Part shown: piece after piece, positions 500-24,247 of the stretch | Numbering within the stretch: the stretch's first letter is position 1 | Layout: each line of letters opens with the position of its first letter | Virus record (IMG/VR): IMGVR_UViG_3300036766_000194 | Span: 235,876-299,875 of that record | Reading direction: 5' to 3' (one strand) | Length of the DNA stretch: 64,000 bases | Position numbers and translations under genes: made by a program | The notes under the pieces: generated by a model | Databases searched by the model: none | What the model saw: the letters and a program-made list of their open reading frames with translations, nothing else | Told to the model about the DNA's origin: nothing

Positions 500-665
500 A
501 CTGACCAAGTTCCTCGAAAGTAGTGACGGAACCGTCATCACCGACCCAACGAGTCGGCATACGACCAACAGAAGCAGCAACATATCCGTCGTTGCGACGC
601 CAGACATAATAAACGTCAGCATCCCTGTCCATAGCTCCTTTGTGTAAAAACCAAGCCTTAGCCAT
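429..665 (-). CDS. hypothetical protein (78 aa) with duplicated 3' end
   Basis: ATG preceded by GAGG; the N-terminus is duplicated at the window start. Confidence 0.55.
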   Translation of the reverse strand: MAKAWFLHKGAMDRDADVYYVWRRNDGYVAASVGRMPTRWVGDDGSVTTFEELGQYTDWNLAYRRILDENAARPYQAY

Positions 666-712
666 TATTGACCTCTATAGTGGAGTGGAAATTAACTCAA
701 CTGAGGAAGAAT
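630..712. repeat. 83-bp direct repeat, copy 2
   Basis: Identical to 1-83. Confidence 0.95.
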
Positions 713-729
713 TAAGTACTTATACAATT

Positions 730-1743
730 ATGCAGATTCCTATTCCTCCTTCTGGAGTTATACCTAACCACATTTTTGAAACCTATTGGAATTTTGCCAG
801 TGAGCGTCAACGTGTGTTTTGGAAACGCAAGAATGGTGAACCAGGTCCTTGGAGTGAAGATCCTATTCTGCAAACCTATAAATTTACCAATACTTACCGG
901 GTACTGGATAGAGTCAGCCAGTACCTATTGAGGAATATCATCGTCTATCCGGAGTGTAGCGATTTGGATTGTACAGTCCACTCTTCTCCTGAGAACACAA
1001 TCTTCCGTATTATGTTCTTTAAGCTATTCAATCGTCCAGAAACTTGGGAAATGCTCAGCAGTGAATTAGGCGAAGAACCCCATATAGATAATTTTAACTT
1101 TACCATCTACGATGAAACTCTTACATCTGCTCAAGATCGTGGAGAGAAAATTTATTCCAACGCATACATGATGACAGCTGCGGGTAGTAACGGGGATCGT
1201 CGTCACCGGATGTATTTGCGATTGTATGAAAAGATGTTTCATGAGGATAAAATCCAGGACAAGATTTTAGAAGCCACTTCACTAGAGGCTCTCTACAATC
1301 TTATCCGTACATATCGGACCATGGGACCATTCCTCGCGATGCAGTACGCAATTGACCTCAATTATTCTCCGTTCGTAAATTTCTTAGAGACAGACTTCAT
1401 CATAGCCGGACCGGGAGCTAGAAGAGGAATCCTAAAATGTTTTGATAGCATAGGAAACCACAATGAAGCTGATGTTATAAGATGGGTTCAAGAAACTCAA
1501 GATGAACAATTTATGTCGCGAGGGTTAGAATTTAAAAAGATAGGAAATCGTCCTCTACAGTTAATTGATTGCCAGTCGTTATTTTGTGAGGTGGATAAAT
1601 TTACAAGAGCAAGTAACCCTGAAATCCAGGTTGAGACAGGATCCGGGGATGCTCAAAAACGAGCAAGGATTAAACAGAACTTCAAGGAAAACAGTAATAA
1701 GATTGAGTATGTGTTTCCCTCCAAATGGGGAGTTAAGATATGA
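730..1743 (+). CDS. aGPT-Pplase1 / 5-hmdU DNA kinase helical-domain protein (thymidine hypermodification)
   Basis: Motifs YWNFASERQRVFWKR, PWSEDPILQTYKFTNTYRVLDRVSQYL, GPFLAMQYAIDLNYS, AGPGARRG and LIDCQSLFCEVDKF are typical of the family. ATG 730 is preferred because the called TTG at 640 lies inside the 83-bp repeat. Confidence 0.85.
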   Translation: MQIPIPPSGVIPNHIFETYWNFASERQRVFWKRKNGEPGPWSEDPILQTYKFTNTYRVLDRVSQYLLRNIIVYPECSDLDCTVHSSPENTIFRIMFFKLFNRPETWEMLSSELGEEPHIDNFNFTIYDETLTSAQDRGEKIYSNAYMMTAAGSNGDRRHRMYLRLYEKMFHEDKIQDKILEATSLEALYNLIRTYRTMGPFLAMQYAIDLNYSPFVNFLETDFIIAGPGARRGILKCFDSIGNHNEADVIRWVQETQDEQFMSRGLEFKKIGNRPLQLIDCQSLFCEVDKFTRASNPEIQVETGSGDAQKRARIKQNFKENSNKIEYVFPSKWGVKI

Positions 1744-2940: not shown

Positions 2941-3055
2941 GAGTGATTAAGGAAACATTCGACACTAAATAGCTGCTTATGGCGTTAGACGACATATTGC
3001 TCTTCTTCCAACGTTTTCAAAGTCTTTACAGAAATCTTCCTATAAAGTCCCGACA

Positions 3056-3637
3056 TTACTGCACCAACTCGGGATGACGATACCCCGCCACCGTGAGAAC
3101 CTTGGTAGCATAATCATCCCCGCTAATAGTTCCGTCGTCAGTTCCCATTCCCAGATAGTGATGAAGTCCACCGCGCAATCCGTGAAGTCTTTTGTAAGAA
3201 GATAGAATCTTCGTTCCTTCTTCAATTCCGCGTTCAGGGTCCATAAGATCTTCACAAGGGATGTTCCAAACTCTACTGTTAACCTGCATGTATCCGCAAG
3301 AATAACGCTTAGAAGACGCCTGAGAATGACAACTTGACTCCACAAAAATGAGAGCAGACAATACTCTTGCCGGGATGTTGTGATCAACGGCCTTACGAGC
3401 CGTAATATAGATCAGATCCTCGTCTTCACAGCCATTAGCCGCATAAATATGACGAGAAACATCTTCAGCCATATGATATTTCTTCTGAAGTTTTTCCTGA
3501 GAAATTTGATTGATTATATCCTCAGGGGAGAAAGCCTTAACACGGAGGGGTTGGGGAACTTGAAACTCAGCGGTGATAAAGGACCCTGCTGTAGCTGAGA
3601 AAACTATAATTGAAGTTACAATAACCAATATTCTCAT
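3056..3637 (-). CDS. SLT-family lytic transglycosylase with N-terminal signal/anchor
   Basis: ALIFVESS (catalytic Glu), GYMQV, L.DPE..IE.G..IL, DYATKVL; hydrophobic N-terminus. Confidence 0.85.
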   Translation of the reverse strand: MRILVIVTSIIVFSATAGSFITAEFQVPQPLRVKAFSPEDIINQISQEKLQKKYHMAEDVSRHIYAANGCEDEDLIYITARKAVDHNIPARVLSALIFVESSCHSQASSKRYSCGYMQVNSRVWNIPCEDLMDPERGIEEGTKILSSYKRLHGLRGGLHHYLGMGTDDGTISGDDYATKVLTVAGYRHPELVQ

Positions 3638-3699
3638 ACAGGTATTCTACTGTAGAAAGCAGACTTCGGTTAGTTTGTAAACCTATGTAGATACTGTAG

Positions 3700-3939
3700 T
3701 TACTTGCTTAATTCAGCCTTCAAAGCATCGTGACTCTGGCCCTTATTAACTTTTCCATCAATAATGTGTTTCCAATTATCTCCCGGTCCAGTCCATACTT
3801 CTTCATTTCCTCTAGTGTAGTGATCCCATCCAGAAGGTTCAGCATGTTGGAATTCAAAACCTAAAGGAGTGAGCAACGCCATATCTTCATCACGATCGCG
3901 AGCATCAGCCCAACGGAATAAACGGGAAGTAAGTCTCAT
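3700..3939 (-). CDS. hypothetical protein (79 aa from ATG 3939; frame open back to a TGA at 4050-4048)
   Basis: GAGG RBS before MRLTSRLFRWA. Confidence 0.6.
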   Translation of the reverse strand: MRLTSRLFRWADARDRDEDMALLTPLGFEFQHAEPSGWDHYTRGNEEVWTGPGDNWKHIIDGKVNKGQSHDALKAELSK

Positions 3940-4097
3940 GGGTGCCTCTATAATGAAAGCGAAAAATTGGTGCCTGCAATAACGAATTTTCGAACGAATA
4001 GAGTATTCATAGATAGACGGACGCTCTGTTCGGCGCAACCCGTCAAATCACAAAAACCAAAAATATTCTTTTTGTTTTTCAGTCATAGTCTCACCTT

Positions 4098-4171
4098 TGG
4101 AACGCCCGACGAGACTTGTACCCGCAACCTTCCCTTTTGAAGAGGGCTGCTCTACATTGAGCTACGGGCGT
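4098..4171 (-). tRNA. tRNA with UCA anticodon (putative opal suppressor; not tRNA-Sec)
   Basis: ACGCCCG-TA-GCTC-AATGTA-GAGC-A-GCCCT-CTTCAAA-AGGGA-AGGTT-GCGGG-TACAAGT-CTCGT-CGGGCGT-T-CCA. It has a 7-bp acceptor stem, a 5-nt variable loop and an encoded CCA. The T-loop (TAC) and D-loop are non-canonical. Confidence 0.8.
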
Positions 4172-4389
4172 GTAGTTTTACCAAGATTCATATTCCGTTA
4201 CGTCTAAACTATCGTTACACTTGTTACAGCGGACTACAGTGTTTGGTCCAATTCCACTTGCCCCGCTCTGCGCTACAGTAATATTCTCTCCCTCACAATC
4301 AAACTGGTGGGTAAGAGGGATAAATGGTCACGTTACCACTTCATGAGATCTGAACTTATAAAGATAGCAGGTTGGTTACAGGAACACCA

Positions 4390-4533
4390 TTACGAGAGAA
4401 ATAGGATCAATTCGTATGAGCATTCCAGCAAAAGTAAATTGATAGATGCTTGTTTAAGAATTTCGTTAACAGCAAGTTGTAAATCAAGAGGTAACGGCGT
4501 TAATTGCCGTAACTCATCATCCAGAGATGACAT
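4390..4533 (-). CDS. small hypothetical protein (47 aa, MSSLDDELRQ...)
   Basis: AAGGAG RBS right after the upstream gene; below the ORF-track cutoff. Confidence 0.35.
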   Translation of the reverse strand: MSSLDDELRQLTPLPLDLQLAVNEILKQASINLLLLECSYELILFLS

Positions 4534-4551
4534 TGTAACTCTCCTTAAAGA

Positions 4552-5190
4552 CTAGAACGACAAAATCCAACTAAAAATTAAATTGACTCCAGGCGGTAGT
4601 AAAAGAGGGGGTAGGGTCTTATAATTTATTAGAGTAACTGAATTAGGACTCGGTCCTCCCCCATATGAAATGTCAGCGGGGTTCCAATAAGGAGCCGTAA
4701 GCATGTTGGTGGGAGTCTGCTTAGATCCTCCTCCAATTAAGCCCATTTCTCTTATTCCCACACCTGTGATGTTATCTGTGGTTGCGTTAACAAGTGTTTG
4801 AAAATCCACAAGATTGGTAAACTTTGTAACCGGAGTAAAATTTATATTGTCTGTGGTCGTAACGAAATTTACAGTACTAAGCTGCTTACGCAATACCTGA
4901 GCGATGAGAGCCGTCTGACCAGGGGTTTCTGTAGGCTGGGTATCAGGACTCCAGGTGGGATCTCCAGTTCCTAGAGCCAGTCCCCAAACCGCATAGAGAC
5001 AATCGCTTGATAGAACATTCGGTCCCGAAATGAGAGCCGTATTGGGGAGGTTATTCGCCATGAGTCTAGCAAACAAACTCTTAACTGTGTTGACTATAAC
5101 ATTGGGACTCTGCCACAGAATTTCTCCCGTATCTTGACGAATGATACGCGGTAGCCCCTTTACAACTGTGTTTTCGACATGCTCTAGCAT
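4552..5190 (-). CDS. baseplate/tail-fibre attachment protein (tail-collar-like)
   Basis: NVIVN...LALGTG...QTAL...IREMGLIGG...LINYKT pattern seen in myovirus fibre-proximal proteins; lies after the wedge genes. Confidence 0.55.
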   Translation of the reverse strand: MLEHVENTVVKGLPRIIRQDTGEILWQSPNVIVNTVKSLFARLMANNLPNTALISGPNVLSSDCLYAVWGLALGTGDPTWSPDTQPTETPGQTALIAQVLRKQLSTVNFVTTTDNINFTPVTKFTNLVDFQTLVNATTDNITGVGIREMGLIGGGSKQTPTNMLTAPYWNPADISYGGGPSPNSVTLINYKTLPPLLLPPGVNLIFSWILSF

Positions 5191-5214
5191 AGTGCTCCTC
5201 TAAAATAATACCTT

Positions 5215-7422: not shown

Positions 7423-10400
7423 TTAACTCGTTTTGTAATCCAGCTGTATTCTTCCCGGTACGAAATATTCAGTGCTTGATATCTGTATATCCTTGGCTCC
7501 GCCTTCTCCAAAAACTTGATAAGTTACAAAATAGGACTGTAATCCTGGATTTGCTATAGTAGAAGGAATAGTGATTAGAATTTTCTGAGCATAAGAAGAG
7601 CTTAGGGATTGAGTACTGCTTATTTGATCATTTGTTCCAATTATGTAGAAACTAGGAACAGTACTATTTACTAGGAAATCTTGAACACTTGTAGCTCTAC
7701 GATACGCTTGTCCTTGATACAACAATCCTACATAAGCAGTTGAGGATCCTCCTCCGGGGATAGTCGCATCGGGGAGAACAGCAGAATTGGTTATAAATGA
7801 CTGTATGGGTAATTGTAAGTTTGTAAAAGAAGGATCCGAACTTAAAGGATTCCAGGTTGTCTGTGAAGGGACCACAATTCCTATGTCATAAGCTCCATCA
7901 CTCTTAGCAAACTTTATCAAAGGAAGCTGTACATTGGTAACTCCTGTTACAGACTTAACCTGACGAACAACTTCGGACATGACCAACTTATTACCGGGTA
8001 CATTGTCTAAAACAATGCTAATCATGCTACGGATCTTGGCATCTATAACATCCGGAGATACCTGGGAAGAGATCTCCACCACCATTGTTATATCAACGGG
8101 GTTAGCAATCATTGACTTAACCAGGACATCTGCTGCTGCGTGCTTTGTTACCGCAATTTGAGTTGCTAACTGATTAACAAAAGCAGGATATTGGGTACTT
8201 ATTGAAAATGTCTCATTGATGAAGTAGCTAACTTTCACCGTAGACCCCGTAGGGATCTGTCCTGTAAGAATTCTTGCTAGGCTTGCTATTCCACTGGTGG
8301 AATTATATACTAGAGAAAAGTCAATCCCTTCACGCATAACAACATCAATACCTGCTACGGTAAGTGTTACTTTTATGTATCGGTTATCGTGAGCAATTCC
8401 TGCTCCGGTTAACCCCGTTGCTAAGAGAGGATCGGTGTTAAAACCGTCCAAAGACAGTTGAGTGAAGTCATAAGACTCAGGCATCCACACGTTATGAATA
8501 AACCCCGAGTTTGCCAATTGGCTAGAAACAGTTCCATTAAGAGTTGTGTTTTCTTGATTTACAAATGTAACCTGTTCATATAGAGAATACTTGTAATATG
8601 AAACCACCAAAACAGGGGGATTGACACTGGCTGGGGCAGGAATGCTCCCTGTAGAAACCCTATTCAAACTCCAGTTGTTATAACGTCCAGTCCTAACCAA
8701 GGTGTAATCCACCCCATAAGTATACAAGGTAGAAAGGTCCCCACTACGAACAACTAAGGAAGGTAACACCTGACCGTTGATGGTTTTTTGTAGAACTACG
8801 TTTGCTCCCGAATCAACGTCAACGGACATTGCGTTATCAATAGAAACTATGGAAGAAGTTAACGAGACATTTTTAGTTGTCTGTAATAGGCTAGAAGACG
8901 GAATCAAAATCGTATCTCCTGCTAACTGAGAACCCCCATTCAATAGAAAATCTTGGGTGCGTACTAGTTGTATTGAAGTAGGAGAAACCACCCCGGTATT
9001 CTGATTTCCAGTTACGCTATTCACAGAAATAATGGGTTGTAGGGTAGGAACATTGTTCAAAGGAGTATGAATTCTAGCAAACATTCCTATGCTATAGGTT
9101 CCAGCAGAAGCGGATTGTAAGGCATTGACAGCCACTGAATTTGTAGCCGAAACACCTGCTATGACAAGAGGTTGCTGAGATACAAATACAGAATTTCCTA
9201 CCAGTTGATAGGCTAATTCGTTGGGATTCAAGAAAAGAAACCCATCTGTATTGTCAATGAAAGAATTCAAAGTACCTAAATAAAACGATTGACCACCTCG
9301 TTGTACAATAACTTCTACTGCCTGTTCTAAAGGAGAAGTTAGCTGAGAAAACCCACTTATAGAAAATTTCAAAATACTGCGATCCACAAGAGTCAAGGGA
9401 GTGTAAGCACTAAATGTCCCCTGAGGAGCAGTGTTTTGATATTGATAAATCGCGGTTTCTGTCTGCTGAGAATTGGACGAACCACGAACATATAAATCAA
9501 CTGTACCAAAGACGTGTTTCTGTCGAATAGGATCCCAATCACGCAGCATCTCTAGATCCCCAGCGGCCACAACATTAGCAGCAACAATAGAAGGAATAGC
9601 ACGAGCCTGAATTAAGTATCCATTCCGTGTTCCTGTATCAACTCCAGTAACAATACGGTCCTGAATCTGGGCTGCATAAACAGAATTGTTTTGGCTGTCA
9701 GTTCCAAAATTAGCCGGAACTAAGTTTGTTACACTCCAACCTTGAGGTCCCCCACTAACCACTGTAGTAATTGTTCCTACTCCTACATTTCCAATACTTC
9801 CAGTGGTTGTACACTGAGCGGGAACTATCACCTGGTATCTTCCATATTGGGAATCGAAAAAACTGGACGCGGAGGCAGGAGAAATAGACGCACTTCCTGT
9901 AGTTACAAAATTTAACGCAGGAGTCTGAGAGTTTGGGCTAGTTGCTACAATAGCTCCTTGAGGGATAACTATAGATTGTAGAGGTTTAGTGTATGTGTAG
10001 AAAGTAAGATTAACAACCGCTGTTGTAGATCCCCCTCTCACAACACCTGCCTGCTCACCCAACATATCAAACTGCTTATTGATGAATGCCTGTGTATCAG
10101 AAGCCTTCATTCCATAAGCTCTAGAAATCTGCTGTTTTATAGGAGAATCAGAGTAAGAGTCACTAATTCCATCATTATTAGCATCATCAATCTGAGTAAT
10201 AGCACTGATACTAGAAGCCATATGACTGAACCACTCTCGAACAGACATGTTAGATAGTTCTACTGCGATAGGATCAATAACTAAGTCACGCAATTCGGAA
10301 CGAGGAGTTAAGTCTAGTTGAGGATAGGCGCGAGTAATTTGAGAGATCATTCTCCCTGCTATATCCTCCTTACGCTGTAATCCTAAAAAGTCTGTAGGAT

Positions 10401-12794: not shown

Positions 12795-15700
12795 TTACTT
12801 TACTGTCAGCAGCAGGTTATGAGAGAATACACGCTTCTTAGCATCACGACCTGCTGCGTAGTTTCTTCCTCCCACATACAGACGAGCAACTTGTTTCTTA
12901 CCGATACAGGTAAATTTGGCAAAAGACCATTCCAGTTTACCTTCTATATCAGTTAAGACCGAAGCTGAACCCATTTTATCAAACACCTCTTCTACAGTTA
13001 GAGGAGTGACCCGATTATCTTCTAATGCTTTTAGAGATTCTAGTGTAGGAATAGGAGTTGACCCAGACAATTCAACCTCAGCCCCATTTTCTGCTACGAT
13101 AAGATAGCAAACCTCTTCACTAGTTCCTGTCCATTCCACAGGGAACTTATCTACAGAAGAATTAATTGAAATAGTCTCTCCTGTCAAACAATCTAATAGA
13201 CTCCCCACAGCTACACTAGACACTACAACACCTTCTTGAACAAACATGTCTAGAGTTGGGCAACCCCCTCCTCCACCACCTGAAGAAGGAGCAGCAGGAA
13301 CCGTTAGAGAAACCGTAGCAACGTTCACATTGTTCATATAAGTGACATCGCTTGTCACGAAACTATCTCCACTAAGATAGGTAATTACTCCATGTAAAGT
13401 AAGATTTAGAGTAGACGAAGAAGCAGTACTTATTACAGGCGGAGTTGCTTGAACGGTGTAACCAGAAATTCCAGAATAATTAGGAACTGTAGCAGTAACG
13501 GGGTTCAACTTAAATGCAGCGGTAATACCTGAACCATTGAAGCTAGACCCTGTCCAAGTCGGGTTGTAAGTACCTGTTGAAGATACTTTCAAATAGGCAG
13601 CTTGAACAGTAGAAGCAGGGATAACCCCAGCAGGTATGTTTACCGTTCCTAGATTAGTATAACCAGAAGGAGCGGCCCCTCCCATATCAATGACTGAAAC
13701 AACTACATCATTTGCGTTGGAGGTAGTTACTGATCCTGTTCCGAATGTACTAGTTGTGGACCCGGTAAAATGTCCTTGAACATCTACCGATACTGGAACA
13801 AGCAGCCCACTTACTTCATTTGCTATCACTCCAATAAGAGAATTAAATTGAGTTCCGGTTACTGACAAAGTGATTGTTGTAGTTCCTGCAGAAGTAATAG
13901 GCGCTGTCCAAATAAAGTTACACCACTCAGAGGAAGGATCCACATACCCCACTTGACGAGTCCACACGTTACCACGTGTATCACTTATTGTAGGACTAAT
14001 CAAGGTTCCCGGTCCCGCGTAGTCAAAGAAGGTTCCTGTAACCATCAACTGGTTACCAGAAGTAGTAGCGGAATTTAGAGTTACAGATAGGGTTCCTGGA
14101 GATCCGTTTTCAACATACCCTGTCTTAAACTGAATTACGTTAAAACTATAAGTTGTACTCGTAGCAGGGATTCCGTTAGAATAAATCGGAGTTATGCTGT
14201 TGGTCGTCAAAACCGTACCACCCCAAATAATGGTTGCTATGGTATTACTCTGTAGAGGAGGCAAAGGTTTAATAAGAGAAATAGTGAACGTCTTTTGTGT
14301 TCCATCTCCTATGATAGTGAGAGGAGAAACTGATACATCAGAAGCTAGATGAGGATCTAGTAAGTAGTTAACTTGGGTAGCAATAGCCTGCACACCATAA
14401 ACCGTTCCCGTAATAGCTCCGTTGCTTACTCCTGAACCTACATAAATGTCCAAACTCTTGTTACTATCTTGGTACCAAGCTATATCAGCATCAGCCAATA
14501 CTAAACTAGTGCTTACAACGTTTGCGTCAATAGCTGCCCCGTTATATCCAAACTGAGAGTTTCCCCCACTGTAAGCAAAAGCCAAGCGACCGTTCCACTC
14601 TGTGTTGTTAGCGGACAGTCCTAGTACTCCCGTGGGGTAATTTTGTAAAACTGTCGTCTTATCTACCGCAAAACCATTGTAGGTTTGAAAAGAAAATATA
14701 TTTAGAGAAGGGTCATTGTAAATGTAGATATACCCAGAAGTGTTCTCCAGAACAGGTATGTATGACTGACCTGTTCCGCCATACTGAACGGACAGGGTAG
14801 GAAAGAACCCCGTTCCTGGCGCCAAACGTAGAGCCGGGTTAATGTACACTGTCCAAGTGAAAGTGGCACTTACTGTAACTCCTTGATCGGTTATGGTTAC
14901 AGTTAAATTGTTACTACCCAAAGTTCCATTTTGGAAAGGACCTGTAATTTGAATAGTTGCAACGCCAGAAGTTATGCTAAGAACCGTTGCTGTAGCCCCG
15001 GTTAGTCCTCCCAACTGTGCGGTTATTTGTGAGGTTTGTGTTGACAAAACTCCTGAAGCAATTACATAAAAGGAAAGATTTGGACGAGGATTTACAGACC
15101 CTACATTTCCATTGGATACATAACCCAAGGAATTTGTAACAAGACCATTTGTGTAATCAAGTCCTGTCTTCAAAACTACACCTGTTGTCACAGTAACACT
15201 CAGTGTTTTGTCATAATAAGCACCTATGTTATCTGTAACTCGGAAGGTTACTGAACGAGTACCCACTTGGGTAGTTGTGCCAGAAACAACCCCGGTAGAG
15301 GGAGACAAAGTAAGGCCAGAGGGAAGTGTAGTGCTACTTAAAGGAGATATGCTCCAAGTGTAGGGAGAAGTTCCCCCTGTAGCTGTTAAGGTTGTACCGT
15401 ATACCGATCCCGCCGTAATAGAAGGAAGAGAAGCGGTGGTAATAGTTAGAGTACTTGCCTGAATTAACAGGTTGAGAGTTTTTGAAGGAGCAGAATTTGT
15501 TGCAGAATCGGTACAGTTAAAAACTATACCTGCATTGAAAGCTGAACCTCCTGTATTTCCTGATAAAACTCCTGCGGAAGTAAGGCTTAGAGAACCAGGA
15601 AGAATAGAAGAAGTGCTAAATGTATAAGGAGCCACCCCTCCAGAAGCAGCTAGAGTAGTAGTATAGGATGTGTTGATGATACCAGAAGGTAATGATGCCG

Positions 15701-18185
15701 TTGTTATGGCAAGATCCGTTCCTGTGCTCAATAACATGTAGGCAAAAGCAGAGTTTCCTCCGCTATCTGTAACTTCTACTTCCACCGGACGATTTGTAAA
15801 TGATGTTCCCGAATAAACTCCAGATATAGTAGCCGTAACTCCCTGATTAGAAGAGTCAGCCGTGAGAACTAATCCAGCAGGAAGAGAATTAGGGGAAGCT
15901 GGGGGAATCTGCCAAGAAAAGGGAGCAGTTCCAGGACCCACCGCACGTAAAACTCCTTGATAAGCCACCCCGACATTAATTGTCCCCACGCCTGAGGTGT
16001 CTATCTGAAGCCCTGTTGAAGACCCTATTTGAAGAGTAAAGGTTCCGGTAGCAACAGTTGGAACAGCATCCTTAACCTTCATGGTTAAGGTTTGACTATA
16101 TGAAGTTGCTGAAGTTATTCCTGAAAACACTCCAGTACTTGAATTAAAAGAAATTCCAGAAGGCAGTGTCCAAGTAGCCGAAGGAGGCGTGAGACCATCA
16201 TCAGACCAAGTGTAGGGGGATGTTCCTCCTAAAGCAGACATAGAAAAGCTGTATGGCTGTCCCGGTACAATAATAGGAAGAATTGTTGTTGTAATGCGCA
16301 AAGTGTTGTTAACATTCACATTAAGAACAGCACTTGTGGAGTTACCCACAGAGTCCGTCAACACAAAGGTGTCATTATGATTAGTTCCATTAACTGCTGT
16401 AGTAGTCCCACTAAAATTTCCTGTACTGGAAAGAGTTATCCCAGTAAAAGCGGGAGATTCATTATTAGTTCCTCCCGGCCACTGAGAAGAAGACCATGTA
16501 TAAGGAGGAACGCCACCAAATCCCTGTAATGAAAAACCATACGATTGCCCTGTAACTATAGAAGCTATTTGTTGTGTTAAAATAACTAGGGGAGGTACAT
16601 AATTAGACGTGAATCTCTTATACAAATAAGCCTGCTGACCATTTGTGTTTGTAACTTGAAACCAGACATCAAAATACCCCGATTCAGTGGGAGTTCCTGC
16701 AACAGAAGAATTTCCAGTAGAAGCAATTTTAACCACACCATTGGGCGCATTTATAGTCGTGTCTACATATGCTTTAAGACCTGTGGGTAGAACTCCTTTA
16801 ACAACAGAAACGGAAGCCAACGGAGAAGGAGAATTACTGCTTATACAATTTGTGGAGGCTGTTGCCGTAGGATAAGGAGTTTGAATTTTGGCATCAACTA
16901 GGTTATCTGACAAAGTAAATTGAGAAGTAAAAATAGTCCAATTTATCGTTACGGTGCCATGAACAAGATTCTGTGAGTCAATATACTCTATAATAGAAGG
17001 AGTTGTTTGTCCTCCCGCAACAGTTCCATACAATAGACTAGTGTTAGCATCTAAAGAAATACCTGCGGGAAGTGTAGACCCGATCTGAACTCGAGCAGAA
17101 TAATTTACATTCTTTGATATGTTAGGAGAATTAAAATAGGGCTTTAAAGGATTCAAACCTATAGAATCTCCCACGATATATGGCTTAGGATAAGCTGTAA
17201 ATGAAAAACCCGAAGCTGTAGAATTCTCTGATAACAAAGTGTATTCACGAGAAACAGTAGCTACTTGAGTGGTTCCCTGTAATATGGGAAGAGGAATTCT
17301 AAGTTCTGAATTCCTAAAAGAAGTGGGTGGTCCTTGAACTTTCACAATTTTGTTGACTGAATCAACAGAAACTGTAAGCCCGTTACTAGGAGAAGATAGT
17401 GTAGGTGTTCCTAATGAAAAACCCTGGAAGTCTCCCAATACAGGGAACACTATAGCCAGGTTATCATTAGGACCCCAGTAATGATCAAAATATGCTTGAG
17501 AAACATGGATGCTACTTACTGGCTGTTTTGCTTGATAATAAAAAGACCCCGAAGCGGAGACAGGTGTAGGGGAACTATCTTTTATGGTAGCTGAAAAATT
17601 ATGTGTCCCCAGTGAACTGGTAGGTACATTTACGAGGGTTTCTAACTGTCCGTCAACGAGTGAAAATACAGTAGAAGAATTGATGCTATACGTAACCACC
17701 GTAGACACAGAATTACCTATACTATCAACCGCATTCAATCCCACGGTAAAGGAACCGTAACTTGTTAAAGTAAAATGTAACGTATTGTTTGAATCAATTG
17801 TAGGACTTGGAACAGTTGTTACGCTAGAAATTATAGACCAGGTGACATACCCGCTTCCTCCATTAGAAACAAGAGGAATAGAAAAAATTGCTGGAAAAGA
17901 ACTCGGAGCAAAAGATTGGCTGTTATTGAGAATACTAAAAATTGTGGGATCATCTACAACTACGTTTATCGTCAAAAAAGAAACATTCGTTGCAAAATCA
18001 ATAACCTTTAATCTTATAGAATATGTCCCCGAATTAACCGCAGTGGCATCAAGAAACATAGTCTGATTTGTATTGTCTAGGTTAATAGTTCCTGGAAATG
18101 TAGTAGAAATACCCGGAACCGTCTGATACAGATAAGGTGGTGTTCCTCCCACAGAAGTTATAGGTACTGTAATCGTAGTCGGCAT
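12795..18185 (-). CDS. giant Ig-repeat (He_PIG-like) fibre protein with C-terminal Hint domain, 1796 aa
   Basis: Repeated ITT.SLP...Y...L.A.GG..PYTW...LP.GL.L...G..SGT units; Gly linker followed by C-PTLDM...VFSHN near the C-terminus. Confidence 0.85.
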   Translation of the reverse strand: MPTTITVPITSVGGTPPYLYQTVPGISTTFPGTINLDNTNQTMFLDATAVNSGTYSIRLKVIDFATNVSFLTINVVVDDPTIFSILNNSQSFAPSSFPAIFSIPLVSNGGSGYVTWSIISSVTTVPSPTIDSNNTLHFTLTSYGSFTVGLNAVDSIGNSVSTVVTYSINSSTVFSLVDGQLETLVNVPTSSLGTHNFSATIKDSSPTPVSASGSFYYQAKQPVSSIHVSQAYFDHYWGPNDNLAIVFPVLGDFQGFSLGTPTLSSPSNGLTVSVDSVNKIVKVQGPPTSFRNSELRIPLPILQGTTQVATVSREYTLLSENSTASGFSFTAYPKPYIVGDSIGLNPLKPYFNSPNISKNVNYSARVQIGSTLPAGISLDANTSLLYGTVAGGQTTPSIIEYIDSQNLVHGTVTINWTIFTSQFTLSDNLVDAKIQTPYPTATASTNCISSNSPSPLASVSVVKGVLPTGLKAYVDTTINAPNGVVKIASTGNSSVAGTPTESGYFDVWFQVTNTNGQQAYLYKRFTSNYVPPLVILTQQIASIVTGQSYGFSLQGFGGVPPYTWSSSQWPGGTNNESPAFTGITLSSTGNFSGTTTAVNGTNHNDTFVLTDSVGNSTSAVLNVNVNNTLRITTTILPIIVPGQPYSFSMSALGGTSPYTWSDDGLTPPSATWTLPSGISFNSSTGVFSGITSATSYSQTLTMKVKDAVPTVATGTFTLQIGSSTGLQIDTSGVGTINVGVAYQGVLRAVGPGTAPFSWQIPPASPNSLPAGLVLTADSSNQGVTATISGVYSGTSFTNRPVEVEVTDSGGNSAFAYMLLSTGTDLAITTASLPSGIINTSYTTTLAASGGVAPYTFSTSSILPGSLSLTSAGVLSGNTGGSAFNAGIVFNCTDSATNSAPSKTLNLLIQASTLTITTASLPSITAGSVYGTTLTATGGTSPYTWSISPLSSTTLPSGLTLSPSTGVVSGTTTQVGTRSVTFRVTDNIGAYYDKTLSVTVTTGVVLKTGLDYTNGLVTNSLGYVSNGNVGSVNPRPNLSFYVIASGVLSTQTSQITAQLGGLTGATATVLSITSGVATIQITGPFQNGTLGSNNLTVTITDQGVTVSATFTWTVYINPALRLAPGTGFFPTLSVQYGGTGQSYIPVLENTSGYIYIYNDPSLNIFSFQTYNGFAVDKTTVLQNYPTGVLGLSANNTEWNGRLAFAYSGGNSQFGYNGAAIDANVVSTSLVLADADIAWYQDSNKSLDIYVGSGVSNGAITGTVYGVQAIATQVNYLLDPHLASDVSVSPLTIIGDGTQKTFTISLIKPLPPLQSNTIATIIWGGTVLTTNSITPIYSNGIPATSTTYSFNVIQFKTGYVENGSPGTLSVTLNSATTSGNQLMVTGTFFDYAGPGTLISPTISDTRGNVWTRQVGYVDPSSEWCNFIWTAPITSAGTTTITLSVTGTQFNSLIGVIANEVSGLLVPVSVDVQGHFTGSTTSTFGTGSVTTSNANDVVVSVIDMGGAAPSGYTNLGTVNIPAGVIPASTVQAAYLKVSSTGTYNPTWTGSSFNGSGITAAFKLNPVTATVPNYSGISGYTVQATPPVISTASSSTLNLTLHGVITYLSGDSFVTSDVTYMNNVNVATVSLTVPAAPSSGGGGGGCPTLDMFVQEGVVVSSVAVGSLLDCLTGETISINSSVDKFPVEWTGTSEEVCYLIVAENGAEVELSGSTPIPTLESLKALEDNRVTPLTVEEVFDKMGSASVLTDIEGKLEWSFAKFTCIGKKQVARLYVGGRNYAAGRDAKKRVFSHNLLLTVK

Positions 18186-18231
18186 TAGGGTGTCCTACTG
18201 AGTATTTCTGTATTTTCAATGTGTATAATCA

Positions 18232-21200
18232 TTAGGATATAACCACGTTCACATCACCACTTCCCGTGCTTGTAATTCCCTGAGAATCAATGACTTGGTA
18301 ACTAACACCTATCGTATAAGATCCTGCTAATCCAGATGTGCTAATAAACGGTACTGAAAAACTTCCCGAAGTCTGCAAAGAAGAATTTACATCATTGACC
18401 GAAGAATTCGCCAAATTGGTATTTATGGATATAACACGACTAGTTGGAGAAACAGTGACTTTTCCAGTCAGACCTCCCGGTATGGTAACTGATGTTACGT
18501 TATACTGAACGGGAAGGTGTGCTAATTGGACCGTTACTCCTGCTACAGGAAGAGTCAATGAATATACTCCCGGAGTTGACGCAGCAACTATACTCCAGGA
18601 TTGCGCATTGTATAGAACCGTTATAGTTGTTTCTGCTTTAATCTGAACTGTTATGACGCCGGAAGTGGTTGATGTTTGAGGACTTACTTCCGTATCGGTA
18701 ACTGTCATATTAGAAGAACAAACATATGTTCCCCCAGGAGAAAATTGATTAACTGTGATTCCTAATTGAGCATTAGAAGAGTTATTATTTTGAGGAACAA
18801 ATCTAGCATCACTTTCTCCTGTTATGTTTATGCTGTAAGGTTGATTACCTCCAACAACAGAGACAGGAGCCGCAAAAGATGCTGTAGCTGCATATTCACT
18901 TACCACAGCTGTTATGTTAGTTCCAGTTGCCACCAATGTGGGATAGACAACAGATATGATAGATAATCCGGCTATAGGATTAGCCGTTGTGTGCCCAATA
19001 GTATCAGTTCCTACAGTATTGTTCTTATAATCATAGGCCATATTGAAACCGTCAAAAGTTAGGTTAGTAACTTGAGTTGTGGGCTGACCACCGTTAAGTG
19101 TCCCTGGCGCTCCAACAGTTCCCGGAGGCGGAGATCCTACACTTGTTAAGAGAGGAAGGTCAGAGTCATTGGGTTGATATCCTATGTAGGCAACATTTAG
19201 GATTGCGTTGTTATTTACGGAACGATAAGAAACTCCTACAACAGCTGAGGTGGGGAATCCAACCATAGTTGCGCTACGTGCTTTTATTTGAAGAGAGAAA
19301 GATTGCGAAGCTGTTGTCCCGAATGAAGCAGAAGTAGCCGTCACAACAACACTATTAATACCAGTTACCGTGGGTGTTCCTTGTAGATACGCTCGTGTTC
19401 CCGTAGCCCCTGTTAAAGTTACGCCTGTGGGAAGACCTGTGGCAGTCCAGTTAGCTACCAAATCCGACTGAACATAGTAGGTGCTTGCTGGAATAGAACG
19501 ACCTGCGTACATATATGCAGGTAAATTATTGTTCAATATGTGGATAGGTTGTTGAACGGACTTGTTAATTGTGACACTGATAGTGGTGTCAGTGGTGGAC
19601 TGAATGCTATTAGAATCTGTAGCTCGTACAACAACTTGATATGTTCCTGTTTGTTGAGTAGAAGAAGTGAAATAAATTGTGTTATCGGCTCCTGTGGTTA
19701 AGGAGATGTTAGGTAAGGTGGTCCCACTTCGTACCTGGAATGTATATGGACCAGTTCCTCCCTCTGCTACAAGAGGATAAATCCAACTAGGAGTGGTTGC
19801 CAAGTCAATCGTAAAAGCGGAAGAGTATATAATAGAAACTACCGCAGCATTGGTTGGAGAAGGAAATGTACCTGAAGCCTCCACCGTTATAGATTCACGC
19901 TTAACAGCAGTTGCTGTAACGGATAGAGAAGACTGAACAATGCTTGTAAATTGTGCTAGAACAGAAGTGGACCCTACATCTCCTGCTGCAGGTGTAGAAC
20001 CTCCTGTTTGATTTATAAATACAATTCCAGGAGCAGGACGAGTAAGTGTTCCACTAGGAGCAGCTACACTCATCCAAGCAGGGAGAGATCCTTGTAGAAG
20101 GCTGAAAGTAGCACCTCCGTCACCTGCTGTACTTGTTATCGTAGCGTTACAATAGGGACTACCGCTCTGGTATAAAGCAAATCCATAGAATTGACTTGCC
20201 CCTGGTATGTAAGCAGAACCCACAACAGAGTCAGGTAGAACTCCCCCAGAAATTTGAGTAATTGTCCATGCTGCGGGGTTGGTTCCAGGAACAGTGACCA
20301 CAACGGGGTATATGGTGTAAGTTGTAGAATTTTGCGCTTGAACCGTAACTTGGATAAGTTTTGTGGTAACGTGTCCCACCGCATCAACGGCCTTGATGCC
20401 TACTTGATAGGTTCCATTAGCTTCTGGGATGCCTATGACTTCCGTTCCATAAACACCCACACCTAGCAAGGTGTTTGTGGCAGTAAGATCTAAAGAATAT
20501 TGAATTGGAAGAACACCCCCGGTAGAACTTATCGGGAAGGTTATAGCAACCCCAATTCCCGGAGTAGGCCAACCAGTTGGAGCTTGAGGATAGAAAGACT
20601 GATTTCCTGTCGTGATGATTAGAGTAGGAGGAGCAACTCCAACCACAGTAACCGCAGAAGGGTTGACTATTTGAAGTCCGCTGCCAATAATCCCATCATC
20701 TGTGAAAGCTGTCAGTGTGTAGGGAGACTTACCACCAAAAACAGGTACTGATAATTTAAACTGATCTGATGCATATACCGTTGATTGACTTACTACCCCA
20801 AATCCTAAATCAGCTGGACTTAGAGCCACAGTAAACACCTTAGAAACTCTAGCTCCAATAGCATCTGAAACCTGTATTGTTCCACTGTAGGTTAGATTGA
20901 AGTCGGTGGTGCTGTTGTACGTTACTGGGATACCGTGTAGCAAACCTGTGGAAGAATCAATCATTATTCCCAGAGGCAATGCTCCCGATACGATAGCCCA
21001 AGCATAAGGAGGAAGACCTCCAGTGTTAGTCATTTGAACACTGTAAGGAGTGTTGACCTTAGCTGCTGGTAGAGAAGAAGTTGTAATCACCAAATCAGTT
21101 TGAACTGAGAAAGGAAAAGAAGCACTGGCAATTGAGCCGTTAGCATCTGCTACAGAAAAATTGACAGTGAAATTTCCTAAAGCTAAAGGAGTTCCGCTTA

Positions 21201-24200
21201 AAGTACCGTCAATACTTAAAGTTAAACCAGAAGGCAAAGAAAAGTCAGTGTACCAAGAATAGGGGGGGTTCCCACTGATTGCCTGAAGTTTAAATTCCGT
21301 CATAGGTTTACCCACAATAACGGTGGGTAAGGTTACGGTACTTATCTTTACCGTACTGGTTTGAAGAATAGCCCCTGGAGAAAGAAGATCAGGGAGATTT
21401 AATAATTCCTTTGAAAGAGGACGGCCTTGTAAAGGAAACACGTCCAATGCCATAGTATCTAAGAGAGACGAAGCATTATTAAAACGTGAAGTAGCAACTA
21501 ATAGTTTAAGTTCATTTGTTACCGTATCACGGACCAGGCTGCGAGAAGCAACTTCCCAAGGTTCCGGTTTAACAAGAGCAGCCGTGGCATCCACTATTTC
21601 GAACCCTTGATCACCAGAAATACCCAGGGTGCCTGTTAGGTCTCCTGCTCCTGTTTGCGCCGTACTAAACTGTTGATTCGTAACGAATAGAGACAACACA
21701 TAGGTTCGACGCAGTTTAACCGGAGGATTACTATTGCTAAAGTCGTTTTGAGAAGTGATTGTAACTGTCTGAGTACCTGGAGTACTGAAAGATTTAGCAA
21801 ATGAACGAACAGATAAAGGTACAAATCCAGTGGTTGTATTGTCTTGGTAAGTTACACTCCAAGAGTCTGCTCCTGCATAAGCGGGGTTCAAAGAAATAAC
21901 TACAGGTTGCCCAAGCATTGTGGTCGCTATAGACAGACTAACCGAACTAGATGTTAATTCGGTAGGAAATTTATGACTTTGATCCCACGGAGCAGAATTC
22001 GTTGCTAAAGAAGGATTAGTAGTCAGGGCCGTCATATTGACGGCATAGTCACCCGAAGCTAACACCGTTTCATAGATTCTATTAGAAAGAGTAGAACCAG
22101 GGAATTCTAGACCTGTAGGCAAACTACCATTCAAAGTCTGTAATTGAGGAGTTCCTCCTGGAATCTTAGTTAGATAAATGTCCCAGGCTCTATAGGCAGT
22201 GTATCCACCACTTACCACATAAGGCTGCCAATTCAAGGTCAGATTGTAGCCGCTATCAAGGGTACCAATTGTGAGAGATCCTAACAATTGAGAACTTGCT
22301 TGTATAGAACTGGACAGTACGATTATAGGAAGACTGTAAGAAGTTCCATAATAAGAAGATCCGTAAACAGATATAACAGAAGTAGTAGGTTGAGAGGTTG
22401 CTGCCTGAGTTACTCCTAGAACGTTTCTAGATCCGCTAGAAGAGGTGCTCTGTAGGAACTTGAGGGTAACTGGCGTACCTGTTAAACTCCACTGTATGTT
22501 ATAGTTTGTGTTGTCTGGTTCCGATGCTGGGTTCACAGCCACTCCAACAACGGTAGGAGTGGTGATCATTAAAGGCGCGGCATTTTGAGTAACTGTCAAC
22601 GTAACTAACCCACTTTGACTAGGAGCATATCCGGTACTGGAGGCATATACATGAAAAGTATAAGTCCCTGCCGTCAAAGCATTTCCAATAATCTGGTTAC
22701 TGGAAATAAACACTCCATCCGGTGCTCCAATCAAAGAGTATGTTGCAGAAATTGGGCTAGCCGTAACCACATCAGTGGAAGTTAGAGTTACAGGAGTCAT
22801 TGTGGCTCCTGTTTGAGTGCTTATGGGGATGGCAGAACCCCCGTTAATTACCAGTGTTCTCTTGCCATAACTACGCACGGTTGCTTCGGCAAAACCTGTG
22901 CGAGTTGTTGGGCTACCGTTATTTGCTGAAATCTTTATTCCCCATTTTTGACTAGGATCCGCCGTAACTGGGATGACAACGGGAATAGTGGCGGTCAGAC
23001 TGGAAGATGTTAAACTGTAAGGACCCAACGCCGATAAACCCGCTTCAAGACTACTTCCCGTCTCGGATGTTATAGCAAGAGTAAATGTTTCAGCATTAAA
23101 TTCCCCCGCAGCGACGGCTGAAACAACTACGTTAACCGTATCCCCAGCATAGCCTTGATATAATCCTGCCCCTCCGGGAGCAGTGCTCAATTGTAGTTTT
23201 ATGGCATTTGTAGCTGCCCAAGTGGTACTACCTGTGGAAGTTTGAAAGGATCCCAGAGTCTTTGTAGCATAGACTGTATGAGGAACAGCTTGATCCGATA
23301 CCGTGAGAGTAAAAGTTACCGATCCTCCCCCAGACGGAGTCCATTGTGAAGAAACTAATCCTGTACTGGTTACGTTACCCGATGCCCCTGTAAAACTTCC
23401 TGTAGCAGTTCCTGACATGACCCACAAATACTGAAGAGACTTGTTTTGACCTTGTAGATAATTTACCGCAAAATCCAACTGAAATCTAGAATTAGCGTTG
23501 TCATAATAAACGTCAGCTATCACATCGATAGTTCCAACTTTACTGGTCAAAGAAGAAACTTGGAAAGTTTTAGTGAAAGCACGATCGGGAGAATCATAAA
23601 ATGACCCTGGACGATAGGCTGAAAGTGTCAAAGGCGCTGATACCGGAGTTACGAGTTGTAACCCCCCCGAAACAGTTGTCATGCTGGTCGGAGAAGGGTC
23701 GTTAACATGTAAAATTGCTGTGGTACCATCTTTATCAATGAAATTCAAACCAGAAGGCAGACTAACCGGAGGGATAAAATTCACTCCACTAACAATAGTA
23801 CCATTAAGACCCACACCTACAATGGTCGTATCAGTTACCGTGGAATCATAACTTGGTATGATAAGAGTAGTGAGATCTGATGAGGATTCTTTGATGTAAA
23901 AAGGTTCTTTTACTTCCAGAAGAATGGGGAAATAAAGGGTGGTTACACCATCAGTAGCTGTTACATAAAATTCAAAAGGATCAGTTCCAGGGAGAGCACT
24001 AGAAAAGGATAGAGTAAGAATACTTCCAGTAGAATCTACAGCACTGGTTAAAAAACTAGGTGCAGACGGGGAAACAGTGTATACCGTAGTCCCTGCCGCG
24101 CCCGAAGCTGTTAGAGTTCCTAGTATTCCTGACGACAGAGAAGCGACACGAACGGATAGTCCCGGTATCCCAGCAGTTTGAACCAAAATCATTACGTTGT

Positions 24201-24240
24201 TTGTTTTTGCAACAAAATTGGGTTGTAGTGATAGACTCAT
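18232..24240 (-). CDS. giant Ig-repeat (He_PIG-like) virion protein, 2002 aa
   Basis: Ser/Thr-rich, with repeated LPSGLTL..GTLSGTP units. Confidence 0.85.
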   Translation of the reverse strand: MSLSLQPNFVAKTNNVMILVQTAGIPGLSVRVASLSSGILGTLTASGAAGTTVYTVSPSAPSFLTSAVDSTGSILTLSFSSALPGTDPFEFYVTATDGVTTLYFPILLEVKEPFYIKESSSDLTTLIIPSYDSTVTDTTIVGVGLNGTIVSGVNFIPPVSLPSGLNFIDKDGTTAILHVNDPSPTSMTTVSGGLQLVTPVSAPLTLSAYRPGSFYDSPDRAFTKTFQVSSLTSKVGTIDVIADVYYDNANSRFQLDFAVNYLQGQNKSLQYLWVMSGTATGSFTGASGNVTSTGLVSSQWTPSGGGSVTFTLTVSDQAVPHTVYATKTLGSFQTSTGSTTWAATNAIKLQLSTAPGGAGLYQGYAGDTVNVVVSAVAAGEFNAETFTLAITSETGSSLEAGLSALGPYSLTSSSLTATIPVVIPVTADPSQKWGIKISANNGSPTTRTGFAEATVRSYGKRTLVINGGSAIPISTQTGATMTPVTLTSTDVVTASPISATYSLIGAPDGVFISSNQIIGNALTAGTYTFHVYASSTGYAPSQSGLVTLTVTQNAAPLMITTPTVVGVAVNPASEPDNTNYNIQWSLTGTPVTLKFLQSTSSSGSRNVLGVTQAATSQPTTSVISVYGSSYYGTSYSLPIIVLSSSIQASSQLLGSLTIGTLDSGYNLTLNWQPYVVSGGYTAYRAWDIYLTKIPGGTPQLQTLNGSLPTGLEFPGSTLSNRIYETVLASGDYAVNMTALTTNPSLATNSAPWDQSHKFPTELTSSSVSLSIATTMLGQPVVISLNPAYAGADSWSVTYQDNTTTGFVPLSVRSFAKSFSTPGTQTVTITSQNDFSNSNPPVKLRRTYVLSLFVTNQQFSTAQTGAGDLTGTLGISGDQGFEIVDATAALVKPEPWEVASRSLVRDTVTNELKLLVATSRFNNASSLLDTMALDVFPLQGRPLSKELLNLPDLLSPGAILQTSTVKISTVTLPTVIVGKPMTEFKLQAISGNPPYSWYTDFSLPSGLTLSIDGTLSGTPLALGNFTVNFSVADANGSIASASFPFSVQTDLVITTSSLPAAKVNTPYSVQMTNTGGLPPYAWAIVSGALPLGIMIDSSTGLLHGIPVTYNSTTDFNLTYSGTIQVSDAIGARVSKVFTVALSPADLGFGVVSQSTVYASDQFKLSVPVFGGKSPYTLTAFTDDGIIGSGLQIVNPSAVTVVGVAPPTLIITTGNQSFYPQAPTGWPTPGIGVAITFPISSTGGVLPIQYSLDLTATNTLLGVGVYGTEVIGIPEANGTYQVGIKAVDAVGHVTTKLIQVTVQAQNSTTYTIYPVVVTVPGTNPAAWTITQISGGVLPDSVVGSAYIPGASQFYGFALYQSGSPYCNATITSTAGDGGATFSLLQGSLPAWMSVAAPSGTLTRPAPGIVFINQTGGSTPAAGDVGSTSVLAQFTSIVQSSLSVTATAVKRESITVEASGTFPSPTNAAVVSIIYSSAFTIDLATTPSWIYPLVAEGGTGPYTFQVRSGTTLPNISLTTGADNTIYFTSSTQQTGTYQVVVRATDSNSIQSTTDTTISVTINKSVQQPIHILNNNLPAYMYAGRSIPASTYYVQSDLVANWTATGLPTGVTLTGATGTRAYLQGTPTVTGINSVVVTATSASFGTTASQSFSLQIKARSATMVGFPTSAVVGVSYRSVNNNAILNVAYIGYQPNDSDLPLLTSVGSPPPGTVGAPGTLNGGQPTTQVTNLTFDGFNMAYDYKNNTVGTDTIGHTTANPIAGLSIISVVYPTLVATGTNITAVVSEYAATASFAAPVSVVGGNQPYSINITGESDARFVPQNNNSSNAQLGITVNQFSPGGTYVCSSNMTVTDTEVSPQTSTTSGVITVQIKAETTITVLYNAQSWSIVAASTPGVYSLTLPVAGVTVQLAHLPVQYNVTSVTIPGGLTGKVTVSPTSRVISINTNLANSSVNDVNSSLQTSGSFSVPFISTSGLAGSYTIGVSYQVIDSQGITSTGSGDVNVVIS

Positions 24241-24247
24241 CTTTATC

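Follow-up and report, generated by a model that had tools for sequence, protein, structure and literature searches.

Phages that follow the standard genetic code and carry a suppressor tRNA for a stop codon have been proposed as a first step toward phage code switching, and few of them have been described. A precedent for a TGA suppressor acquired by such a phage was provided by Borges et al. (10.1101/2021.08.26.457843), who also located the code-change modules of recoded (Jade) phages upstream of lysis genes. Here, we describe a transfer RNA (tRNA) gene with the UGA-cognate anticodon UCA in a sediment jumbo phage. The gene occupies positions 4098..4171 on the minus strand of a 64-kb window, which is the whole stretch of DNA analyzed and comprises the final part (235,876–299,875) of the 299,875-bp contig IMGVR_UViG_3300036766_000194, identical to Ga0373622_0000037 of the Joint Genome Institute (JGI); unless another contig or locus is named, coordinates refer to this window. 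The element is a genuine, well-formed tRNA gene of the opal-suppressor type, and the phage carrying it is a rare example of the oddity described by Borges et al. rather than a new system. It combines a UGA-cognate anticodon, an anticodon stem of four base pairs (bp) and a Gly-like acceptor end, in a sediment jumbo phage whose family is large and widespread.

The explanation we favor, which we regard as an evenly balanced call, is that the phage carries an opal-suppressor-type tRNA of competent structure that shares its transcript with the late genes. As these genes avoid UGA stops, they would tolerate the tRNA, on which no genes depend as yet. For the survey of genes and TGA codons, overlapping loci were rejoined without conflicts into 108,265 bp (contig 191,611–299,875), or 36% of the genome, and within this sampled part no phage gene depends on the UCA tRNA. 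If active and Gly-inserting, it would suppress UGA with Gly in a phage whose host uses the standard code, a situation unreported in the phage surveys cited here.

Structure and identity of the UCA tRNA

ARAGORN called a single tRNA in the window (4098..4171, minus strand, anticodon tca; 74 nucleotides (nt)), and the Rfam model RF00005 matched positions 4171..4101 with 54.8 bits, passing the tRNA family threshold (gathering score 29). With an E-value of 4.8e-9 for the window and a match over the full length of the model (1–71), a chance cloverleaf can be dismissed. Since the score falls inside the range of the five other tRNAs of the phage (52.2–61.2 bits; all encoding CCA), the UCA tRNA is not inferior to them.

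The RNA reads ACGCCCG-UA-GCUC-AAUGUA-GAGC-A-GCCCU-CUUCAAA-AGGGA-AGGUU-GCGGG-UACAAGU-CUCGU-CGGGCGU-U-CCA. It possesses a 7-bp acceptor stem (A1-U72, C2-G71, G3-C70, C4-G69, C5-G68, C6-G67, G7-C66) followed by discriminator U73 and an encoded CCA (4100..4098), a D-arm with a 4-bp stem and a 6-nt loop AAUGUA containing one G, and an anticodon loop CUUCAAA (U33, A36-A37-A38) with the anticodon at 4140..4138. A G27·A43 mismatch leaves a 4-bp anticodon stem in the ARAGORN bracket structure; the variable loop AGGUU has 5 nt, and a 5-bp T-stem closes the T-loop UACAAGU. The core tertiary pairs and positions are legible in the sequence: U8-A14, A15-U48, G46, A21, U54-A58 and C56.

Selenocysteine tRNAs (tRNA-Sec) are recognized by a long variable arm, an acceptor/T helix of 13 bp (bacterial form, 8+5) and G73. 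The ARAGORN label "SeC" reflects the anticodon alone, and the 5-nt variable loop, the 7+5 bp helix and U73 rule this identity out, RF00005 being the best-scoring family of its clan. The first-pass annotation, made from the letters alone, had proposed a real UCA tRNA distinct from tRNA-Sec. The ARAGORN call, which it had recommended as a check, and the Rfam match bear this out, and its structural statements were all correct; the minus strand assignment, which it lacked, is supplied here.

Three assemblies, drawn from no fewer than two sediment samples, contain the identical 74 nt with TCA. The same tRNA is present in an independent JGI contig (L007, sample 3300032173) and in a Logan contig of the public sediment run X1 (word depth 34, zero differences over 3000–5200), and gene tables place the locus in two further assemblies. 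As the anticodon is identical in separate assemblies, it is no assembly error; these comparisons use contigs rather than raw reads, so that minor alleles could escape them.

Identity elements were scored against Table 1 of Giegé and Eriani (PMC9976931). Four of the six Gly determinants are present (U73, C2-G71, G3-C70 and C35), while G1-C72 and C36 are replaced by A1-U72 and A36. Trp determinants amount to five of ten (A1-U72, G3-C70, A9, C35, A36); the differing ones are G73, G2-C71, G4-C69, G5-C68 and C34, in place of which the UCA tRNA has U73, C2-G71, C4-G69, C5-G68 and U34. For Cys, U73, C35 and A36 are found and G2-C71, C3-G70 and G34 are not (3/6), and the pair G15:G48 used by some species is A15:U48 here. 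U73 together with G71 occurs only in tRNA-Gly (PMC9976931). Judged by these elements, the identity is split between a Gly-like acceptor end and a Trp/Cys-like anticodon, leaving Gly, Trp and Cys as candidate amino acids.

A mixed identity, with U73, C2-G71 and G3-C70 on the Gly side and A1-U72, C35 and A36 on the Trp side, agrees with the first-pass annotation when judged by the same table (PMC9976931). The annotation was also right that the anticodon loop is one change from Gly(UCC) or Trp(CCA), having overlooked that Cys is likewise one anticodon change away. It further listed the G27-A43 mismatch as atypical; the mismatch is there, but it is known from natural tRNAs and makes suppressors more efficient (PMC13092985). 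Stems of 4 bp occur in 5.6% of bacterial tRNAs (Fakih et al. 2026, PMC13092985). A suppressor derived from tRNA-Thr and carrying the natural G27-A43 mismatch was more efficient than its repaired form, and a tRNA-Trp(CCA) whose stem has 4 bp reads UGA in Escherichia coli (PMC13092985). Because the mismatch is known to raise read-through, we take G27·A43 as a sign of decoding competence rather than of decay.

Stop codon usage and the favored reading

Translating TGA as sense merges no open reading frame (ORF) in the window, where 22 ORFs of at least 300 amino acids (aa) are found under either code; reading TAG or TAA as sense likewise lengthens or merges no long ORF. Over the 108,265 bp, 98 genes were called at a coding density of 91%, ending in TAA (62), TAG (18) or TGA (18). 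The standard code assumed in the first-pass annotation is therefore upheld, and the gene calling it had suggested, with TGA read as sense in the window and 98 genes called over the 108 kb, revealed no supported TGA-split gene. A scan of in-frame TGAs with coding-like flanks returned matches inside or antisense to long genes, plus one intergenic case adjoining the tRNA, which is discussed below. As for the features by which recoded phages are recognized, a cognate suppressor tRNA is present, and genes with in-frame TGA are lacking in the 108 kb. Accessory code-change genes (RF1, TrpRS) belong to only a part of such phages.

Differences in gene length between strains were considered as hidden read-through and rejected: those of the UvrD, HNH and NUMOD3 genes are start-codon choices, and that of an 881-aa gene is caused by an in-frame TAA, not TGA. 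In the strain from sample 3300032173, an AAA to TAA change (Lys to stop; L096:4842-4844 vs L095:11602-11604) splits the latter gene into 384 + 484 aa. This ochre codon is unrelated to the UCA tRNA; it may be a true nonsense polymorphism or else stem from misassembly.

TGA stops are unevenly distributed, ending 2 of the 54 genes in two structural blocks and 16 of the 44 genes elsewhere (Fisher p = 4e-5). The structural genes (window 3056–50339 and contig 191,799–216,100) use TAA almost exclusively and avoid TGA, and in the early/metabolic block (216–239 kb) about 40% of stops are TGA. We dropped the late-gene avoidance of TGA as a sign of suppressor activity, since relatives share the bias toward TAA.

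We propose the following scheme for the favored reading. No promoter-like or terminator-like site for the tRNA was found on its strand, and because it lies on the same strand as the late genes and has no such site of its own, it would be co-transcribed with them. The transcript would be cut by host RNase P and trimmed by 3′ processing, and the tRNA would be charged by a host synthetase. Late in infection, it may compete with release factor 2 (RF2) at UGA codons and cause partial read-through; the 4-bp anticodon stem with G27·A43 and the A36-A37-A38 context would favor UGA decoding. The late genes, which seldom end in TGA, would tolerate such a suppressor.

Several observations weigh against this scheme of predicted expression, charging and read-through. 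In the T-loop, position 55 is A, compared to U55 in 48 of the 51 distinct tRNAs of the fetched loci. None of the 98 genes over the 108 kb is interrupted by TGA, including the genes for major capsid, baseplate, tail and lysin proteins. No release factor or aminoacyl-tRNA synthetase (RF1, TrpRS, GlyRS) was found in the Pfam-annotated gene tables of contig ~180–250 kb or in PHROG scans of the window, ~120 kb in all. The capsid neighborhoods of relatives, at a guanine–cytosine (GC) content of 43–56%, likewise strongly prefer TAA and have few TGA stops; since the bias is found in relatives too, it is a family trait and not evidence of suppressor activity, and is best read as a precondition for tolerating a suppressor rather than a consequence of one. 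Backup TAA or TAG codons after TGA-ended genes are no closer than after others (median 12 vs 11–16 codons, p = 0.73), and several TGA-ended genes would gain 60–109 residues if UGA were read efficiently. Finally, pattern searches of IMG/VR and of JGI metagenome contigs yielded no related tRNA(UCA) from which covariation or purifying selection could be read.

A stronger version of the favored reading, in which the tRNA is an active Gly- or Trp-inserting opal suppressor switched on with the late operon and thus acts as a timing device, appears improbable to us. We are just as doubtful about what such a device would do, namely that early phage proteins and host proteins ending in UGA would be extended or tagged by transfer-messenger RNA (tmRNA), that late genes, with hardly any UGA stops, would be spared, and that a downstream UGA-gated ORF beside the lysin gene would be opened only at that stage. 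Read-through of selected phage genes, as suggested in the first-pass annotation, finds no support in the 108 kb, where TGA interrupts no gene and the sole candidate ORF, described next, is itself unsupported.

The downstream reading frame and the upstream spacer

Sequence and translation place a short ORF (4048..4097, minus strand) directly after the CCA, consisting of an ATG and 12 codons (MTEKQKEYFWFL) closed by TGA. A Shine–Dalgarno-like AAGGTGAG at 4097..4090 precedes the ATG (4086..4084), which lies 11 nt past the CCA; the TGA is at 4050..4048. The order directly 3′ of the CCA is AAGGTGAGACT-ATG, 12 codons, TGA, 36 open codons and a second ATG at 3939, which, following GAGG, starts a 79-aa ORFan (3700..3939, minus strand, JGI gene call). 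The 79-aa gene shares the frame of this TGA, the one stop over 49 codons (no TAA or TAG), so read-through at this codon would yield a 128-aa product.

This arrangement could be a dedicated gate, in which the tRNA would read the TGA at 4050..4048 and extend the ORF from ATG 4086 into the 79-aa gene (128 aa), so that a protein encoded next to the lysin would be tied to the tRNA being expressed late. We judge this to have a small chance of being correct. Its attractions are the good Shine–Dalgarno sequence and ATG 11 nt past the CCA, the lone TGA among 49 in-frame codons, an arrangement whose probability of arising by chance we roughly estimate at a few percent at most, the SLT lysin gene that follows, and an apparent parallel with the position of the Jade-phage code-change module upstream of lysis genes. 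In the linker of 36 codons (4047..3940), however, the codon score is −0.01, less than in 98% of real in-frame windows (mean 0.48), and it steps up sharply at ATG 3939 to the 0.51 of the 79-aa gene. That ATG has its own GAGG site and is the start picked by the JGI gene caller. Neither the extension nor the 79-aa ORF has homologs, as a word search in 5.8 billion proteins and HMMER searches of 1.8 billion representatives returned self-matches only; the marginal matches P0002 and P0003 to the downstream ORF were rejected as repeat proteins, and the one weak match to the extension is to a repeat protein. The 79-aa form alone gives a confident, compact Atlas model (predicted template modeling score, pTM, 0.71), with standalone 76-aa look-alikes spanning query residues 49–115, and all available strains are identical over the ORF, which leaves no selection signal. 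Coding potential, homology and predicted fold do not support the UGA-gated ORF as coding. According to the model, the 79-aa protein folds much like the Cu_amine_oxidN1-like or "stalk" domains found in proteins and enzymes of the cell wall.

The second gene downstream of the tRNA encodes a 193-aa protein (3056..3637, minus strand) that combines a hydrophobic N-terminus (MRILVIVTSIIVFSATAGSF...) with an SLT lytic transglycosylase domain (Pfam PF01464, 25.9 bits vs cutoff 21.3); a weak PHROG match points to a lytic tail or internal virion protein. It is a plausible candidate for a signal-anchored endolysin or a virion lysin. On the other side of the tRNA, the last conserved late gene upstream encodes a 212-aa baseplate/tail-fibre-network-like structural protein (4552..5190, minus strand; weak PHROG and Pfam BW3TFN matches) and was used as the anchor for synteny searches.

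Between the 212-aa gene and the tRNA lies a spacer (4172..4551, minus strand) that alignment with L007 shows to be rearranged. A conserved 84-aa gene survives in it as a 47-aa remnant (4533..4390) after a frameshift; the spacer also contains a 79-bp segment (window 4310–4388 = L007:435-513) that is inverted relative to L007 and bounded by GGTG...CACC, and the 3′ remnant of an 83-aa ORF ending 6 nt ahead of the tRNA. Two spacer haplotypes circulate (window 4172–4551 vs L007:1-647). The L007 haplotype, with intact 84-aa and 83-aa ORFs, is common to the gene tables of ENA ERZ27247960 and Logan SRR9616616; in the window haplotype, shared by Logan SRR11714510, a 17-bp insertion cuts the 84-aa gene to 47 aa and ~270 bp are deleted. 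Also deleted from the window strain is a degenerate tRNA-like element (L007:312-385; Rfam match 312–382) scoring 28.2 bits, just below the threshold of 29, and not called by ARAGORN. Its acceptor and D arms are good; the anticodon loop GUUGUUAG has 8 nt, the T-stem is 3 nt short, and the element ends in CCA, with the ATG of the 83-aa ORF 4 nt on. The UCA tRNA itself is unchanged in both haplotypes.

A tRNA at this site was found in none of the 15 other IMG/VR phage contigs sharing the 212-aa gene, and the cassette of 83-aa ORF, tRNA, 79-aa ORF and SLT gene is absent from these relatives, though homologs of the 84-aa gene are kept. As relatives have none at the site, the UCA tRNA is a lineage-specific acquisition in an unstable spacer, inserted where the late block of structural and lysin genes ends. 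The anticodon-arm pattern matched this contig only in IMG/VR, and the D-arm combined with CTTCAAA matched only the contig of L007 among JGI metagenome contigs. The D-arm 18-mer was found in three other viral contigs of IMG/VR, none with an ARAGORN-callable tRNA, and a T-arm 14-mer gave 82 matches with no sign of relatedness, the tRNA's own contig alone being recognized. In 185,579 genomes, a D-arm 16-mer had 48 matches, fewer than expected by chance; where they fall within tRNAs, the isotypes are Gly, Lys, Asn and Val, and a D-arm common to these four carries no isotype signal. A Gracilimonas tRNA-Gly(UCC) with the same D-loop shares U73 and likewise lacks U55. No other Rfam family or ribozyme adjoins the tRNA.

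Of the three contigs with the D-arm 18-mer, an unrelated one of 42 kb (IMGVR_UViG_3300032456_000006) contains a tRNA-like element (L010:2005-2079) 72% identical to the UCA tRNA, with the same D-arm, variable loop and T-stem, a canonical UUCAAGU T-loop and a degenerate anticodon arm. It scores 37.7 bits with Rfam and is not called by ARAGORN.

The history of the spacer bears on the main alternative explanation, which we consider a tentative possibility: the gene may be a neutral or decaying tRNA, formerly Gly(UCC), Trp(CCA) or Cys(GCA), that underwent an anticodon change and U55A, is poorly charged or used, and persists in an unstable region. A55 is indeed rare (1/51 tRNAs), and no synthetase would find its determinants fully matched (Gly 4/6, Trp 5/10, Cys 3/6). 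The frameshift, deletion and inversion in the spacer and the degenerate element 260 nt upstream in L007, lost from the window strain, fit this picture, as do the lack of target genes in the 108 kb and the restriction of the tRNA to one lineage. However, all stems are intact and the covariance score is on par with those of the other tRNAs of the phage. G18 and U55, both lacking here, normally join in one tertiary contact, so these changes go together; moreover, the short D-loop is found in ordinary bacterial Gly, Lys, Asn and Val tRNAs, and the Gracilimonas tRNA-Gly(UCC) also does without U55. While the neighboring element was lost, the UCA tRNA remained the same in both haplotypes.

Both tRNA-like elements of L007 are followed by an ATG 4–14 nt on, which would suit a non-translational role, either as a decoy or substrate for a host anticodon nuclease or as a tRNA-shaped processing signal setting the 5′ end of the downstream late mRNA. 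We consider such a role very unlikely. The upstream element is dispensable, as its deletion from the window strain shows, the sequence offers no specific pointer to such a role, and no anticodon nuclease is known to target UCA. For two of the functions raised in the first-pass annotation, corruption of host or defense genes and a nuclease decoy, the sequence gives no evidence for or against.

The phage genome and its host

The source is a standard-code jumbo phage of ~300 kb from sediment with a GC content of 42%. PHROG and Pfam matches in the window include baseplate J-like, tail and lysin proteins, a replicative helicase, a primase-like protein and ribonucleotide reductase; the major capsid protein, UvrD helicase, NAMPT and homing endonucleases are encoded further along the contig. 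Megablast against GenBank phages found no close relative. Capsid proteins encoded by 80 IMG/VR contigs, the longest of 463 kb, share 78–85% identity with that of the phage, which places it in a large environmental family. The sequencing runs holding the phage are sediment metagenomes, and no RNA run was shown to contain the locus.

A gene at window 640–1743 (plus strand) matches PF18723, the 5-hmdU DNA kinase helical domain, with 328 bits, and weaker homologs occur in some relatives (L233–L235); the match suggests that thymidine is hypermodified in the phage DNA. Three consecutive very large ORFs (1796, 2002 and 1312 aa; window 12795–28186, minus strand) have no PHROG family match except for one faint head-decoration hit, and JGI annotates a He_PIG (Ig-like) domain in one of them; they are probably fibre or decoration proteins. 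Homing-endonuclease genes (GIY-YIG/NUMOD3, NUMOD3 and HNH) surround the capsid region (L097:10001-10606, 4280-4966 and 7461-7787).

Five further tRNAs form a cluster at L092:7682-8609 (contig ~231,970–232,900) comprising Gln(UUG), Thr(UGU), Thr(CGU), Thr(GGU) and Cys(GCA), each of which encodes its CCA; the 108 kb revealed neither a Trp nor a Gly tRNA. A permuted two-piece tmRNA (L092:5928-6308, contig ~234,270–234,650) lies ~1.2–1.6 kb left of the window start and ~5 kb from the UCA tRNA. It is detected by Rfam (RF04321, 51.6 bits vs 47) and by ARAGORN (tmRNA*), and a 332-kb relative also has one (L229:8182-8532), with the tag ANAPKAMAAHA. Permuted tmRNAs are typical of Alphaproteobacteria, some Betaproteobacteria and Cyanobacteria, and the one found here may hint at the host group.

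The nature of the host matters for one more explanation: if it read UGA as sense, either as Gly in code 25 (Gracilibacteria/Absconditabacteria) or as Trp in code 4, the UCA tRNA would be an ordinary supplementary tRNA. The Gly-like acceptor end (U73 with G71, C2-G71, G3-C70) would suit the former, phages that infect such hosts and yet fit code 11 have been proposed (PMC10746230), and the sample is sediment, where code-25 bacteria occur (PMC4032931). Nevertheless, we find this highly improbable. In code-25 phages, ~90% of genes contain in-frame TGA (10.1101/2021.08.26.457843), as opposed to none of the 98 genes here, and TGA closes 18% of the genes, with no alternative stop close by. The phage also carries the permuted tmRNA, and a 300-kb genome is large for a phage of hosts with genomes of ~1 Mb.

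Relation to known UGA-decoding tRNAs

With the tRNA-Gly(UCA) of code-25 bacteria (SR1/Absconditabacteria, Gracilibacteria), the phage tRNA shares UCA, U73, C2-G71 and G3-C70; it differs in having A1-U72 instead of G1-C72, and in a genome without dense in-frame TGA. Compared with the tRNA-Trp(UCA) of code-4 bacteria and TGA-recoded phages, its loop CUUCAAA is one change from the Trp CUCCAAA, and A1-U72, A9, U31-A39 and A36-A37-A38 are shared, whereas U73 stands in place of G73, and C2-G71, C4-G69 and C5-G68 replace the bacterial Trp G-C pairs (PMC9976931). Like the E. coli suppressor derived from tRNA-Thr2 (Komine and Inokuchi 1990) and the 4-bp-stem tRNA-Trp(CCA), it has an open 27:43 top pair; unlike these read-through tRNAs, it is already fully cognate to UGA, and the effect of its mismatch is predicted by analogy.

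The closest parallel remains the phage of Borges et al. In both cases, a phage tRNA(UCA) is found in an otherwise standard-code genome, TGA is rare as a stop of late genes, and the tRNA lies beside structural and lysis genes. Unlike that gut phage, the present one is a sediment jumbo phage with 42% GC and has no known recoded close relatives; no RF1 or TrpRS is seen in the ~120 kb covered, the acceptor is Gly-like rather than Trp-like, and the T-loop contains A55.

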